The position numbers and the translations under genes are program-made. Shown here piece after piece: positions 1,343 through 7,906 of a stretch of DNA of 64,000 bases (its first letter is position 1; each line of letters opens with the position of its first letter). The notes under the pieces were generated by a model. That model did not search any database. It worked only from the letters and a program-made list of their open reading frames with translations, and was not told the DNA's origin. The stretch spans positions 124,001-188,000 of IMG/VR virus record IMGVR_UViG_3300026518_000006; one strand, 5' to 3'.

Positions 1343-4300
1343 CTATTGCTTCTCATTGATATTTATAATATCATCACCCTCTTTCAATTCATCACAACGA
1401 ATCCAAATCTCTTCGCCATTTCTATAGACAAGTAATTTGTGATTGTAGGTGAATTCATAAGTATTTCCATCTTCAAATTCAATTTCTATAACAGGTTGTT
1501 TTCCGTTATACCAAATGCGGTTTACTTCACTTTCTCCGTTTAATGTAGGTACTTTTATTGCGTCTATACCTATCCATTGCGGAACATTCAACTCTTCTAT
1601 TTTTCTGTAGTCTATATTTTGTTCTTCAAGAATATCATAAATAGATTTATTGCCGTCTGTTGTTTTCATTTTATTATGACCACTTTGACAGTTTGGTGCA
1701 GTAGCCAATAATAGGAAATTTCTAATCCCTTTTTCTTGAATTTTTTTAGACATTTCAGACCACTTGAAACCATTTAGGCTCTCTTTATCAAGTTGTTTGG
1801 TATTTTTTCCGAACATTTTAGAATAATCGGCTTTATCAAATAAAGGATAAGCACCTTTTTTCTCTGCAAGTTGAACACTTCTCTCATAACAATACCAAGC
1901 GATTTTTTCGTAAACCTTTTCAAGCTCGTCTAAGTCTTCAGGCTTCTCATAAGATAATTTATTATAAGCCATCCAATCACCTGTGCCCAACACTCCAATA
2001 CCAACATTTCTAAGAAGTTTTGATGAATTTTCAGCTTCTTTTACGGGCATTGTTCCTGTTTCAATACTTGCATCCATCATATCAACAGCGTTGTAGCAAA
2101 CTCTCTTCAATAGTTTATCTTCAGGGTCGTTTACAATTAATCCCAAATTGATACTCAAAAGATTACAACTGTGGTATAGCCCATCACTTTCTGTACTCAT
2201 AACTCCATTTTTGTAGCTTTGAACCCACTCGGTAGGTGCTTTAGTAACACTAAACGACTCCGTACAATTCATAGTCATAACACCATTAAACATTAATGTA
2301 TGGTTTTTTGGTTCATTACCACAATAAGTTGCTCCTCTCAACCCTGTTCTATCTATATTTTTAACGGTAACAAATCTAATTGCACTTCTATTATATTCTC
2401 TCATAGTAGGCATAACTCTATAAGCTTTATATCCTAAATCTAATAGTTTGATGCACTCAGAACCTGCAATTAATAATCTATATAGAGGTTTAACCGTGTA
2501 TTCTTTTTTATCAGAAGACCCGTTATTTAGAGGCAATTTTCTTTCGCCTCCATTATGTACTTTTTGTACTTTAGAATTAATACCCATTTCTTGTAAGAAT
2601 AACATTAAATTATTAATGAAAATTTCATTAACAGATGCAAATTGGATGCTTTCACTGCCTTTATCGTTTGTTAGAGTACCATCACTATCCATAATACCTG
2701 CTAACCATTTTAACCGACTTTCTAAAGTGTAATCAGAAGTAGGAATAAAAAATCTATCTTTTAATAATCTTGTGTAACTAATGGTAGTTCTATTTTGGGC
2801 TTCATCTTCATTAAATGAAGTATAACCACTAAAGTTATTCACTAAAGCTCTTTTCTCGTGATACAAATAAATTCTTTGTATTCCATTGTTATCTTGAGAC
2901 CCATCCCCTGAAAAAAACCCATTCTCATAAGCCAAAGGTAGCACCTTGTCCCCACTTAAAACAGGCAAATCGAATTTGGCAAGTCTGTCACCTACACTCA
3001 ATTCTTCAGTTCTCTTAATAATTGGAGCTTTTCTGCTGTCATCCTGTACGACTAACCAACGGTGCGCTAATGTGGCATTTATCGTTTGATTATTTGATAA
3101 AGAAACTGTGACTAATTCATCATCATCACTTGTTTTGAAAAGCTCACTCATAGACCATTCGGTACCGTTCCATACTTCAATAGTTTGACCCGATACAGAT
3201 TCAATGTCCACATAACCTTGTTTGGTAAGAATTTTGGTATCACCTGATACACAAAGGTTGGCACTATTAGCGATTAAATCTTCACCTTTCAGGTAGTTAC
3301 ATAGATTTAGATTGTCTTTATGTGTAATATAAAAGTCGCCTGTTTCAACCCAAATTCTCAGAAACTCTTTCCAAAGTGCTTTTGCATTTTCCTTTTTGCA
3401 GTTTGTTAGTGTGCCTTTTTCGCATAAATCATAGATGGTTTCTTGTGCTTTATACAGCTCTTCATCAATCAAAGAAACAATATCAATCCCTGTTTTTGTT
3501 TTCACTTCATAACTATCAAAGAGATATACATCTTTGTTTTTTAAAACAGCATCCACAAAATAATCATCCACTACTACTTGTGGGAACAAGTCAAAACACT
3601 TATTTCTCAAGTCACCTTGTGTTTCGGATTTCATTTCAATAAAGCTATGAATATCACCGTGCCACCAATCCAAAGCAGGAGTAATAGCACCTTTTCGGAT
3701 TCCTCTTTGGTTTACCGCTACTGCAATATCATTGATTATTTTAGCCCATCTGATGATATTGTTGGCATTTGGGATATTGTCTGAGTACGAACCTTCAGGT
3801 CTTAAACCACCTAAATAAACTCCAATTCCGCCACCCTCTTTGGAGATTTTAGCCATATCCTGCCAAGTTTTTGTAATACTCTCAATATTGTCTAAGGTAG
3901 GAACAATAAAACAGCTACCTACATTACCACCTTCTCTTCTGAGATTTGATTTAAATGGTGTTGCTAATGAGATATACATTCTCTGTAGCATAGTGAAATA
4001 TTCTTTTGTCTTTTTAACTCTTTCACTTTCATCTTCAATGCCACCTAAAATCATAGACGAAGCCATATCAGAAAATTGAGGGTATTCAATAACTCCTCTT
4101 GAATTTTTTAGAATATACTTTGAGCGAAGACTTAACACCTGAGCAATATTCATATCAAAGTCGTACTTCGGGTTAATAGCCTTTTTGATTGTCTTTATAT
4201 CCTCTTCTGAAAAAGGCTTCATAATATCTTTTCTGTAATGATTTGTTCTGACCGCATATTTAATATACTCATCAAATTGGTCATATTCAAATTTTGTATT

Positions 4301-4573
4301 TTTATATACTTGTCTATGGAGTTGGTACATTGATAATCTACCTGCGACAATAGACATCTCAGGATGGTCTTGGTCTATCATTGATGTAGCTGTAGAAACT
4401 AATAAATCTTGAATATCAGAGGTTTTCATATTGTTTTTAAAATTCAGCGTTAGCTTTGCTTCCAACTCAAGTTGATTTTCTTTTAATCCTGTGTATGCGA
4501 ATTCAAGTTGTTTTTTAATTTTACTATTATCAAACGGTTTTTTTGAACCATCTCTTTTAATTACTGTTTTCAT
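1343..4573 (-). CDS. nrdA: Class Ia ribonucleotide reductase alpha subunit, N-terminal fragment with ATP cone, cis intein and terminal IntN
   Basis: ATP-cone start (VIKRDG), GSCF, ANL|C..N|CTE, GIGVLG, LLATAPN. Confidence 0.95.
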   Translation of the reverse strand: MKTVIKRDGSKKPFDNSKIKKQLEFAYTGLKENQLELEAKLTLNFKNNMKTSDIQDLLVSTATSMIDQDHPEMSIVAGRLSMYQLHRQVYKNTKFEYDQFDEYIKYAVRTNHYRKDIMKPFSEEDIKTIKKAINPKYDFDMNIAQVLSLRSKYILKNSRGVIEYPQFSDMASSMILGGIEDESERVKKTKEYFTMLQRMYISLATPFKSNLRREGGNVGSCFIVPTLDNIESITKTWQDMAKISKEGGGIGVYLGGLRPEGSYSDNIPNANNIIRWAKIINDIAVAVNQRGIRKGAITPALDWWHGDIHSFIEMKSETQGDLRNKCFDLFPQVVVDDYFVDAVLKNKDVYLFDSYEVKTKTGIDIVSLIDEELYKAQETIYDLCEKGTLTNCKKENAKALWKEFLRIWVETGDFYITHKDNLNLCNYLKGEDLIANSANLCVSGDTKILTKQGYVDIESVSGQTIEVWNGTEWSMSELFKTSDDDELVTVSLSNNQTINATLAHRWLVVQDDSRKAPIIKRTEELSVGDRLAKFDLPVLSGDKVLPLAYENGFFSGDGSQDNNGIQRIYLYHEKRALVNNFSGYTSFNEDEAQNRTTISYTRLLKDRFFIPTSDYTLESRLKWLAGIMDSDGTLTNDKGSESIQFASVNEIFINNLMLFLQEMGINSKVQKVHNGGERKLPLNNGSSDKKEYTVKPLYRLLIAGSECIKLLDLGYKAYRVMPTMREYNRSAIRFVTVKNIDRTGLRGATYCGNEPKNHTLMFNGVMTMNCTESFSVTKAPTEWVQSYKNGVMSTESDGLYHSCNLLSINLGLIVNDPEDKLLKRVCYNAVDMMDASIETGTMPVKEAENSSKLLRNVGIGVLGTGDWMAYNKLSYEKPEDLDELEKVYEKIAWYCYERSVQLAEKKGAYPLFDKADYSKMFGKNTKQLDKESLNGFKWSEMSKKIQEKGIRNFLLLATAPNCQSGHNKMKTTDGNKSIYDILEEQNIDYRKIEELNVPQWIGIDAIKVPTLNGESEVNRIWYNGKQPVIEIEFEDGNTYEFTYNHKLLVYRNGEEIWIRCDELKEGDDIININEKQ
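1346..1690 (-). other. Split intein N-half (IntN, 115 aa) of nrdA
   Basis: Starts CQSG after APN, block B FTYNHKLL, ends at the stop codon with no block F or G. Confidence 0.88.
2267..3253 (-). mobile_element. Cis-splicing intein (329 aa) with LAGLIDADG endonuclease, at the thiyl-radical Cys of NrdA
   Basis: CVSGDTKIL start, ATLAHRW block B, GFFSGDG and LAGIMDSDG motifs, ends NGVMTMN|C. Confidence 0.93.
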
Positions 4574-5419: not shown

Positions 5420-6802
5420 TTACAGGTCATTCATTAATTTAAGGTTTGCTAAATCTTCAAGGGTTGTTTTTCCTTTGGAATCTACACCATTGTTGATGAT
5501 GACTTTATCAGGCATTTGAACAAGACCTTTTCCGTTTTTCATAGCCTCATATTTAGCTAAGTTCGTGATTTTCTTAACCTCAAGCTCCAAAATATCTTTA
5601 CGAACAGCTTCATATTTAGCTTTTTTGATTTGCGCTTCAGCAAGTCCGATATGTAGTTTGGCTTCAGCTTGATATTTAGTCGCAATTTCATTTGCCTTTT
5701 GAATAGCTTGGTTGTCTTTGGCAATCTGAAGCTCTTTCTTTTTATCAATAACCGCAAGTTTAGCCAATTTTTGTCGGTCTACAATCTCCTTTTCAGCTTT
5801 TAGTTTTGCTACTTTGACCTCTTTTTTACGCTCAATGATTTCAGCATCCGCTTTGATAAGTCTTTCTTGTTCTGCCTTTTCACGCATAGCTTGACCTTTT
5901 AGTTTAGCGGTCTTGATGTCTTCTTTTGCGTTATCTTGCTCTTGTACACTCAAGATTTTTTTAGCAACTGCTGACTTTTTAGCCACAAGAAGCTTTTCAA
6001 GAAGTGGCTCAGGAATAGGGTCAGCAAGATTTACCTGAAGTACCTTAATGCCATATTTTTCGAAAGGATTTGATGTTCTGATGATTTTGCCGTCCTTATC
6101 ACGCTTTGGCACAGCTTTCCATACCGTTACAGCTTGCTCTACAGGTTTTCCTGTAGTTTTGTCAACACCAATATCAAGTCGCCCTTTTGTAGCTTGTTCA
6201 ACCACTACTCTCTTACGCTCAGTTACATAAACGCCATTATTAACTTGGTCTTCGATTGCAGATTTAAGACCGTTTAAACCACCTTGAGTTACTTCTTCAG
6301 CTGTAAATTGTTGAGCAGTGTTGGTCGCAACATCAATCATTGTTTTTTGGTAAAGTGAATTTACCAAGTTTCTATATGAGCGAAATGATTTATCAACCAT
6401 CAAAATATGCTCGTCATCGGTAGGAAGCACAAATCTTGCTGTTAGTGGAAGTTTTGCTTCGTATGTATCTGCAAATCTAATATCGATAGGTGTATTGACC
6501 GATGTAAATTTCCCTTTATCGCCACCGTCATTTGTAAACGCTACAGTAGTATCATCCTTATAAGTTCTTTCTGTACCAATCAGAATTGGACTAAAATACC
6601 AATCAGGACCGTGATATACTGTTGTTGTACCTGTAGCTTTGTTTTGATAAACATCTGTATACCCTAGTTCTACGGTACGAAACATCGATGACACTATCAG
6701 CACCGCTATTACACTCAATATACCGTAAATACTATACTTGATGTATTTTTTAAGCGATGATAGCTTTCCTTGTGTTCTACTGTTGTTTAGAATTTCTTCC
6801 AT
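5420..6802 (-). CDS. SPFH/band-7 (prohibitin-like) membrane protein
   Basis: N-terminal TM helix, V..GY..V.Q motif, YGIKVLQVNL, long Ala/Lys/Glu coiled coil. Confidence 0.8.
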   Translation of the reverse strand: MEEILNNSRTQGKLSSLKKYIKYSIYGILSVIAVLIVSSMFRTVELGYTDVYQNKATGTTTVYHGPDWYFSPILIGTERTYKDDTTVAFTNDGGDKGKFTSVNTPIDIRFADTYEAKLPLTARFVLPTDDEHILMVDKSFRSYRNLVNSLYQKTMIDVATNTAQQFTAEEVTQGGLNGLKSAIEDQVNNGVYVTERKRVVVEQATKGRLDIGVDKTTGKPVEQAVTVWKAVPKRDKDGKIIRTSNPFEKYGIKVLQVNLADPIPEPLLEKLLVAKKSAVAKKILSVQEQDNAKEDIKTAKLKGQAMREKAEQERLIKADAEIIERKKEVKVAKLKAEKEIVDRQKLAKLAVIDKKKELQIAKDNQAIQKANEIATKYQAEAKLHIGLAEAQIKKAKYEAVRKDILELEVKKITNLAKYEAMKNGKGLVQMPDKVIINNGVDSKGKTTLEDLANLKLMNDL

Positions 6803-6826
6803 TAGTTTTTTCCTTTGATTTTATCG

Positions 6827-7124
6827 GTACTATATGTACTCATAGAGATGTGACAGCAGAGCGGTACAGTAAACTCACCGACAAGTATAAAACCGTTTCC
6901 CCCTGATTTTATCTATCTTTAAACTTTAAGTCTTGACCTTTAAAATTTTAAACTTTAAGCTTTGAACTTTGAACTTTCATCTTTAAGCTTTAAAGGTTGG
7001 CACATCGCCTATTATTCCTATTTGCTGTAGAATGGATTCAAGTCCATAGATAAGTTCATAATATAGCTTATGAGGGCTGTCGATGTCTTATGTTTCGTCA
7101 CACCTCTATGAGTACATATAGTAC
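6827..7124 (-). ncRNA. Candidate structured RNA with a 28-bp closing stem and an AAAG heptad array
   Basis: Arms 7097-7124 and 6827-6854 pair fully on the minus strand with one G-U pair. Internal hairpins are present, and AAAG repeats at a 7-nt period. Confidence 0.6.
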
Positions 7125-7134
7125 TCTTAGAAGC

Positions 7135-7743
7135 TTATAGCTTGATAGTAGTCGTAGCGTTTGATGTACTTAGTACATAATCGACTTCGTTTTGAAACTC
7201 CATAATCTCGTTTTCAAGGTTATTGATGTATTCACCTAAATTGATTTTATCAAGAAGTTCAGGAGTTCTGAGTTTTAGGTATGTTTCTGTGAAATCTTTG
7301 ATTTTATTCTTGTCCTCAATTCCCTTGAGTTGGTCATCAAGAGCTTCTTGAATCTCATTTTTCAACATTTCAACTTCATTATTAGCACTAGCAAAGTCGT
7401 GCGACAATTTTTGCAGAAGTTGGTCTTTATAATCCATTGTGTCTTTGGTTATAATGGCTTCCGCAACTGTATACTTCTTTCCGCCAATCACCACTTTTGT
7501 TTTCATATTAGAAGCGTTTATGGCACCTTTAATTTTTTCTCTTTGAGCAATGAGGTCTTCAACAGACTGTAAAGAAGATTTAGCCTCATCGGGGTCAAAA
7601 TTTCTTCGTGGTTTACCTGCTACTTGCACACCAACAAAAACATTTTGTCTGATTTTTTTGTTGATTTTTTTGTCAAGAAGTTTAAGTTCATTTAGAGCTT
7701 GTGCGACAGTGATTTCTTTTTCTTTAGTCTTTGATTTACTCAT
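7135..7743 (-). CDS. Coiled-coil protein, possibly DIP1984-like
   Basis: ITVAQALNELKLLDKKI ... EVDYVLSTSNATT pattern. Start set at 7743 from the RBS AAAGGA and a -10 box at 7775-7780. Confidence 0.6.
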   Translation of the reverse strand: MSKSKTKEKEITVAQALNELKLLDKKINKKIRQNVFVGVQVAGKPRRNFDPDEAKSSLQSVEDLIAQREKIKGAINASNMKTKVVIGGKKYTVAEAIITKDTMDYKDQLLQKLSHDFASANNEVEMLKNEIQEALDDQLKGIEDKNKIKDFTETYLKLRTPELLDKINLGEYINNLENEIMEFQNEVDYVLSTSNATTTIKL

Positions 7744-7906
7744 AAAAAGTTCCTTTGTTTTGTTTATAACAGACATTATACAAAATAAAAGCTTTCATAC
7801 AGCTTAATACAACTTACTTTAGAAGTTTTTAGTTCCAACCAATGACTATATCCTATATCAAGGACACCACCACTAAACTTCCACATATTTAAACCTGAAA
7901 CTACTT

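Follow-up and report, generated by a model that had tools for sequence, protein, structure and literature searches.

Does the stretch between a coiled-coil gene and an SPFH gene in a tailed-phage genome encode a structured RNA, and is this RNA functionally tied to one of its neighbours? The stretch lies in 64,000 nucleotides of DNA (the window), which come from a 235.6-kb IMG/VR contig (IMGVR_UViG_3300026518_000006, positions 124,001 to 188,000). The window is low-GC tailed-phage DNA with terminase, tail-fibre repeats, DnaB helicase, and an intein-bearing ribonucleotide reductase. An earlier note, made from the sequence alone, proposed a structured RNA with about 11 AAAG heptads at 6827-7124. 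It suggested, by analogy with TRAP, that the adjacent coiled-coil protein oligomerises on the heptads and that the RNA may be excised by RNase III-type cleavage. As described below, the stretch is a real, previously uncatalogued structured RNA of about 300 bases. It almost always follows the gene of one uncharacterised, predicted helical protein, in thousands of phage lineages (including the model phage T5) and in many Bacillus-like bacteria, so it most likely forms an RNA-protein particle, of unknown function.

What the earlier note described in the sequence is there in every detail. The inverted repeat arms, 28 nt each, are 96% complementary and 242 nt apart. There is no other copy of the arm in the window, with 0 expected by chance. 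On the minus strand the stem folds without interruption, while on the plus strand the same position is an unpaired mismatch; the odd pair is G-U only on the minus strand. Fold z-scores are -6.8 (minus) and -7.1 (plus), driven mostly by the long stem. Tandem Repeats Finder reports period 7 and 11.0 copies at 6917-6994. AAAG on the minus strand ends at 6988, 6981, 6974, 6967, 6960, 6953, 6938, 6924, and 6917, exactly the nine positions that had been listed, with two variants besides. The pairings ACAUCG/CGAUGU, UCAUAA/UUAUGA, AUGGA/UCCAU, and CGGU/ACCG are all present. The stop codon of the upstream gene is at 7135-7137 and the stem starts at 7124, leaving a gap of 10 nt. The downstream ORF (5420-6802) matches Pfam Band_7/SPFH (PF01145) with 30.7 bits against a gathering score of 23.6. 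The parts, read together with the relatives described below, are as follows.

7135..7743, minus strand: gene of the partner protein, 202 aa from the ATG at 7743 (an upstream ATG at 7776 would give 213 aa); predicted helical protein with a small beta-sheet head, phrog_1491, distant DIP1984/DUF6847 ('septicolysin'-named) relative.
6827..7124, minus strand: the whole structured RNA (298 nt), from the P1 5' strand to the P1 3' strand.
7097..7124, minus strand: P1 5' strand (28 nt; family norm 12-17).
6827..6854, minus strand: P1 3' strand, preceded by the conserved GCUG junction (6854-6857).
7092..7096, minus strand: GAAAC, the conserved GAAA junction after P1, overlapping the 5' strand of the long-range pseudoknot (X5').
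6995..7091, minus strand: variable 5' domain, the ACAUCG/CGAUGU stem (7081-7086/7002-7007) enclosing the UCAUAA/UUAUGA and AUGGA/UCCAU hairpins; in most relatives this place holds an H-type pseudoknot and a variable insert, in three lineages a whole tRNA gene.
6917..6994, minus strand: heptad array, 11 units of 7 nt (9 AAAG, 2 variants), split by a 14-nt palindrome (6939-6952) where relatives have a small hairpin.
6905..6913, minus strand: GAUAAAAUC box (family consensus CGAUAAAAUCC), its last base starting P2.
6901..6905, minus strand: P2 5' strand, CAGGG.
6857..6861, minus strand: P2 3' strand, CUCUG.
6892..6895, minus strand: CGGU, pairs with ACCG (6862-6865); extension of P2, equivalent to the family's GG(U)/(A)CC.
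6873..6886, minus strand: P3 hairpin region (ACUUGUCGGUGAGU); relatives have a 4-5 bp stem with a conserved GUUGUnUAAUUG-like loop.
6871..6874, minus strand: GUUU, 3' strand of the long-range pseudoknot (X3'), pairs with AAAC of 7092-7095; only 4 bp here, 5-8 bp in relatives (assignment in the window inferred from position).

Is the element a local oddity? A nucleotide search of the region against 50,697 phage records found nothing, and only protein-level searches reached relatives. The upstream protein matches phrog_1491 (E 4e-52) and 741 phage records, including T5-like phages, Pseudomonas KIL-like phages, Vibrio JSF10, Bacillus BCP8-2, Lactococcus 949, Erwinia and Klebsiella phages, and jumbo phages. 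In each record inspected the gene is followed by 440-500 nt without an annotated gene, and the sequences there show the same features as the window. Homologues are also found in 73 bacterial species. The protein family has 3,761 clusters at 50% identity with E up to 0.001, and about 2,700 with E up to 1e-10.

The linkage was examined in both directions. That homologous genes might lack the element had been set beforehand as the outcome that would overturn the proposal; nearly all of them carry it. A simple rule, a helix whose 5' strand is followed by GAA and whose 3' strand is preceded by CTG, was applied across 80 metagenomic viral loci. It finds a 12-28 bp closing stem starting 3-60 nt after the stop codon in about 66 of 85 phage loci, enclosing 260-490 nt. 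It succeeds in 34 of 73 loci from bacterial species genomes, mostly Bacillus, Brevibacillus, Domibacillus, Exiguobacterium, and Clostridium. A covariance model of the 3' domain, which holds only the P2 helix, recovers one same-strand hit 200-330 nt after the stop in 45 of the 54 remaining loci, and none in two unrelated phage K loci. In the reverse direction, 119 viral loci were fetched with a DNA pattern alone, most of them chance matches as expected for AT-rich DNA. Of the 24 model hits among the first 100, all 19 with enough upstream DNA have the protein gene directly upstream, and no RNA without the gene was found. In one gut-phage lineage (loci L028, L030, L032, L035, L036, L042, and L046; L numbers denote the loci examined) an extra ORF of about 120 codons lies between the protein gene and the RNA, and the RNA 3' domain is then about 600 nt after the stop (L028:3731-3812).

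From 5' to 3', the RNA consists of the P1 5' strand and a conserved GAAA; 5-8 nt that form one strand of the long-range pseudoknot; a 5' domain, in most members an H-type pseudoknot whose two stems both covary; a variable insert; the heptad array, usually in two arms split by a small hairpin; a CGAUAAAAUCC box, the P2 5' strand, and AAAGGUU; the P3 hairpin with its conserved GUUGUnUAAUUG-like loop; the other pseudoknot strand, (A/U)CC, and the P2 3' strand; and GGCUG followed by the P1 3' strand. Of this conserved core the earlier note missed the long-range pseudoknot, P2, P3, and the GAUAAAAUCC and GGCUG boxes. Some variation exists at the junctions. In the Bacillus pumilus and B. paralicheniformis groups (L250:4801-4884, L217:4818-4902, and relatives) the otherwise invariant GGCUG reads CAGCAGG, and Exiguobacterium copies lack the GAAA junction; a family model must allow for these variants.

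Pairs were counted by script on 30 diverse full-length RNAs. In P1 (12 pairs) 98.9% of cells are paired, against a column-shuffle mean of 59.5% (maximum 65.5%) and at most 51% when slid by 1-3 columns, and 10 of 12 pairs show compensatory change. In P2 (5 pairs) the values are 95.3%, 69% (76%), and at most 44%, with 4 of 5 pairs compensatory. In the pseudoknot (6 pairs) they are 79.4%, 56.8% (64.4%), and at most 55.6%, with 6 of 6 compensatory. RNAalifold independently calls P2, while a cognate versus non-cognate test of P2, made with too wide a window, was uninformative. For the pseudoknot, cognate strands pair better than non-cognate ones (p = 9e-7). P3 rests on inspection of individual sequences only, because MAFFT did not keep it in register. 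In the window P1 is unusually long, the 5' domain is atypical, and by positional homology the pseudoknot is only AAAC/GUUU.

In P1, G-U pairs outnumber A-C 70 to 3, which fixes the transcript to the gene strand. This bears on the possibility of a DNA-level element, either a miniature transposon with 28-bp terminal inverted repeats or a replication origin with iterons. Such a reading is suggested by the perfect-looking terminal repeats, the AT-rich tandem repeats, and the two strands folding about equally well. However, it is contradicted by the strand asymmetry, which rules out a purely DNA-level element, and overall it is very unlikely. The element is single copy in the 64 kb, where multiple dispersed copies with conserved terminal repeats are the mark of miniature inverted-repeat transposable elements; the arms differ completely between relatives yet stay complementary; and there is a pseudoknot and a fixed orientation and distance relative to one gene.

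The heptads are a conserved feature. Across 42 non-redundant RNAs, the distance from one AAAG to the next peaks at 7 (56 cases), 14 (33), 21 (9), and 28 (5), against about 0.7 expected for each value. AAAG is strongly strand-biased, with a median of 7.5 per RNA against 2 for CTTT. The alignment keeps the phase, as an A is invariant every 7 columns and the U two bases before it is nearly so. The next three letters are AAG in most lineages but AUG, GCG, or GGN in others (alignment rows L245, L242, L067, and L280), while the heptads within one RNA are homogeneous. The conserved unit is therefore U-Y-A plus a lineage-specific triplet. This could mean co-evolution with the protein, but equally concerted evolution of a tandem repeat.

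What surrounds the module differs between phages and bacteria. In phages, 24 of 42 loci carry co-oriented tRNA genes within 2.5 kb, often starting a few bases after the RNA. In three lineages (L026:3304-3376, L039:3318-3392, and L062:3215-3289) a complete tRNA gene lies inside the RNA, between the 5' domain and the heptad array. The RNA would then be made in two pieces held together by P1 and the pseudoknot, or the tRNA stays as a domain. The window itself has no tRNA. Bacterial copies mostly lack tRNA neighbours. They are stand-alone cassettes in non-prophage chromosomal contexts, with a terminator after the RNA (L208:5790-7000; L250, L222, and L240), among unrelated housekeeping genes. The neighbours in Bacillota include a homocysteine methyltransferase, a permease, a subtilase, a two-component system and, in Brevibacillus, an AbiEii toxin gene. 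The module is thus cellular as well as viral.

One may ask whether the heptad tract is a sponge or decoy for a host factor (an RNA-binding protein, a ribonuclease, or tRNA anticodon loops), the partner protein only folding, protecting, or delivering the RNA. Repeated short single-stranded motifs on a structured scaffold are how CsrB/RsmZ-type sponges work. The position in tRNA arrays, the tRNA genes inside the RNA, and a protein that is not basic overall are in line with it. While possible, this reading is unlikely. The module occurs in both Gram-negative and Gram-positive hosts and in chromosomes without tRNA neighbours, so a common host target would have to be universal, and lineage-specific heptad letters fit a co-evolving encoded partner better than a fixed host target.

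The SPFH gene is only a local neighbour, as downstream genes differ in every other lineage. Nevertheless, a cis-acting 3' UTR or leader that regulates neighbouring genes such as the SPFH gene, without function in trans, has some support in the window. There is no terminator between the protein gene, the RNA, and the SPFH gene. Moreover, a second GAUAAAAUC box lies directly after the P1 3' strand at 6808-6825 (minus strand). This copy of the CGAUAAAAUC box followed by AAAGGAAAA repeats the box-plus-P2 start of the RNA (15 of 18 identical) and contains the ribosome-binding site of the SPFH gene (ATG at 6802). It could let the partner protein control SPFH translation, or it could be chance. Among 49 distinct loci, only the window has such a box within 10 nt of P1. 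A terminator often follows the RNA in other lineages and the structural complexity far exceeds known attenuators, so a purely cis-acting role is very doubtful.

The nearest strong promoter is at 8653-8624 (minus strand), a perfect 12 of 12 sigma-70 consensus with an extended -10 TG, upstream of the run of small genes that leads into the module. The RNA must therefore be cut out of a longer transcript if it acts as a discrete molecule. RNase III excision is plausible here, with 28 bp and no terminator on either side, but cannot be general because P1 is 12-17 bp in most members, too short for classical RNase III. Elsewhere in the window, on the minus strand at 1343-4573, the ribonucleotide reductase large subunit is interrupted by an intein with a LAGLIDADG domain. 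The ORF ends inside a second intein-splicing domain (residues 1001-1070), so the enzyme may be split or carry a second intein running into the next ORF.

What is the partner protein? AlphaFold gives a confident model (pLDDT 90) with five long helices and a small sheet formed by both termini and a hairpin. The only solved relative is 3kdq, the uncharacterised DIP1984 protein. VIA-align gives Z 10.5 over 151 of 152 residues, with the next hits at 7.7, and Foldseek gives probability 1.0; AFDB and Atlas clusters are named septicolysin/DUF6847. Sequence profiles agree only weakly and stay below the curated cut-offs. NCBIfam DIP1984_fam matches at E 4.5e-6 with 26.9 bits against a cut-off of 70, while Pfam DUF6847 reaches 25.6 against 27 in the homologue P0009 and gives no hit for the window protein. 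The protein has no recognised RNA-binding domain and is not basic overall (median pI 6). It does have a conserved K/R patch at residues 21-100, and invariant S78, N79, T92, S192, S194, N195, and T198 next to the sheet. The family is annotated, if at all, as "tail fiber protein", which is almost certainly a propagated mis-annotation.

A type III toxin-antitoxin pair, in which a repeat RNA neutralises an adjacent protein toxin, was considered because of the tandem-repeat RNA next to a small protein gene, the stand-alone cassette in chromosomes and phages, and the Brevibacillus copy beside an AbiEii gene. In ToxIN, CptIN, and TenpIN an RNA of about 34-36 nt units lies upstream of an endoribonuclease toxin gene with a terminator between. 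Here the units are 7 nt, the RNA is downstream of the gene, there is no terminator between, the protein is predicted helical rather than of a ToxN/Kid-like endoribonuclease fold, and no PADLOC defence-system model matches. This reading is very unlikely.

Taken together, the two-way linkage, the shared transcription unit, and the conserved fold make an RNA-protein particle the best reading, held with somewhat better than even confidence. In this view the region encodes a non-coding RNA that is the obligate partner of the protein encoded just upstream, the two forming a self-contained two-gene module (promoter, protein gene, RNA, usually a terminator) in many tailed-phage lineages and Bacillota chromosomes. 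The analysis establishes that the RNA is made from the gene strand, that its ends are clamped by P1, that a compact conserved core is built from P1, the GAAA junction, the long-range pseudoknot, P2, and P3, and that between the 5' domain and the core lies a tract of about 5-17 phased U-Y-A-A-A-G-N heptads with no covariation support for pairing. The remainder is inference, made without direct evidence of binding or of a discrete transcript. The RNA would be co-transcribed as the 3' part of the protein's mRNA and trimmed out, here probably by RNase III on the 28-bp P1 and in tRNA arrays by the tRNA-processing enzymes. The core would nucleate binding of the partner protein through its conserved basic and Ser/Asn/Thr-rich head, and the heptads would then take up further copies side by side, giving an RNA-scaffolded protein multimer. 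That the heptads are multimerisation sites is the most economical explanation of a phased, strand-specific, apparently unpaired tract, and it has precedent in TRAP and, at the same 7-nt period, in HutP. The interpretation in the earlier note is thus partly supported: a structured RNA on the gene strand, tied to the upstream gene and outside Rfam, is borne out, whereas oligomerisation on the heptads remains an inference from linkage and phasing.

A bolder reading is possible but tentative. The window would hold the founding example of an undescribed class of ribonucleoprotein, in which a pseudoknotted scaffold RNA carries a phased tract on which its own encoded DIP1984-like protein polymerises. 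This class would be carried by thousands of phage lineages (T5 included) and by Bacillota, and phages would use it within their tRNA arrays for host take-over or counter-defence. In any case, a structured RNA of 250-490 nt with a dedicated protein partner has apparently gone unnoticed in bacteriophage T5 and in common Bacillus species. Large conserved bacterial and phage RNAs are rare, and each one studied so far (RNase P, tmRNA, 6S, OLE, GOLLD, and ROOL) has revealed new biology. This one comes with tractable models (T5 in E. coli, and Bacillus pumilus or B. altitudinis) and a clear biochemical hypothesis of phased multimer binding, and it corrects a widespread mis-annotation. Its place in phage tRNA arrays links it to the question of what the other tRNA-associated phage RNAs do.

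Has the RNA been described before? No Rfam 15 family matches at the gathering threshold in the window, and at permissive thresholds only chance-level hits (E 0.5-4) are found in 6750-7200. Nothing is found over the RNA in the T5, 949, KIL1, BCP8-2, JSF10, and four Bacillota loci. Full-text literature searches on T5 non-coding RNA, phage structured RNAs, GOLLD/ROOL successors, DIP1984/DUF6847/septicolysin, and heptanucleotide repeats found no description, although subscription journals lay outside these searches and a prior description cannot be excluded. PMC10690425, PMC5737381, and the Minerva preprint (10.64898/2026.09.22.753630) do not mention it. The two abundant phage K lncRNAs next to tRNA genes, lnc001 and lnc002 (PMC9241854), looked like candidates by context. 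Their flanking protein gp233 is unrelated, the sequence read for lnc001 lacks the motifs, and the covariance model finds nothing in either locus (L205 and L206, Staphylococcus phage K 12800-15800 and 37000-40200). They match nothing here and remain unclassified large phage RNAs. On the evidence available this is a new RNA class with a new partner protein.

Among known systems, the DIP1984/DUF6847 proteins share the fold of the partner protein, but they are about 150 aa while this branch is about 205 aa. Ro60 (Rsr) with Y RNA and SmpB with tmRNA are likewise cases of a protein gene directly followed by its partner RNA, whose 5' and 3' ends pair in a closing stem. Both occur in bacteria and in phages, and both have a tRNA-like or tRNA-adjacent theme. 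Here, however, there is no TROVE or SmpB domain, ARAGORN finds no tmRNA, and there is no Rfam Y RNA or tmRNA match. CsrB/RsmZ-type sponge RNAs also carry many copies of a short protein-binding motif on one non-coding RNA. Those motifs are GGA in hairpin loops and CsrA is encoded elsewhere, while here the motifs are phased, apparently unpaired, and linked to an adjacent gene.

GOLLD and ROOL are large ornate RNAs of unknown function found in phages and prophages, typically beside or within tRNA arrays and sometimes with a tRNA inside a variable region (PMC5737381 and PMC12286853). The resemblance raises the possibility that the present RNA acts on its own, as a self-assembling or catalytic large RNA, with the protein as an accessory chaperone, since its pseudoknotted core is similarly ornate with conserved unpaired nucleotides. 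This is distinctly unlikely. GOLLD and ROOL have no dedicated protein and assemble as RNA-only cages (PMC12286853), whereas this RNA is strictly linked in both directions to one protein family and carries a phased heptad tract. There is no Rfam ribozyme or GOLLD/ROOL (RF01998-type) match at E up to 10, and its size is 298 nt here and 244-490 nt in relatives, against 580-800 nt. A hammerhead reading of the GAAA and CUG boxes was rejected because the AUGA part of the core is absent, as read from the sequence.

TRAP with the trp leader and HutP with the hut leader of Bacillus have short purine-rich motifs repeated at fixed spacing in single-stranded RNA, each read by one subunit of a protein oligomer. 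TRAP-binding RNA has 9-11 (G/U)AG triplets separated by 2-3 nt, while the unit here is the 7-nt U-Y-A-A-A-G-N. HutP sites (UAG plus 4 nt), NAG motifs read by a HutP hexamer, reportedly have a 7-nt period (Kumarevel et al. 2005). A 7-nt period with a G-ending purine motif is present here, but the likeness to HutP targets is one of analogy only. The adjacent protein has no TRAP (MtrB) or HutP domain and no Pfam match, and is predicted to be helical rather than a beta-sandwich. The array sits inside a large folded RNA after the protein gene and not in a leader before regulated genes. The RNA therefore belongs to no known family, and it resembles GOLLD and ROOL in context and TRAP and HutP targets in repeat logic.
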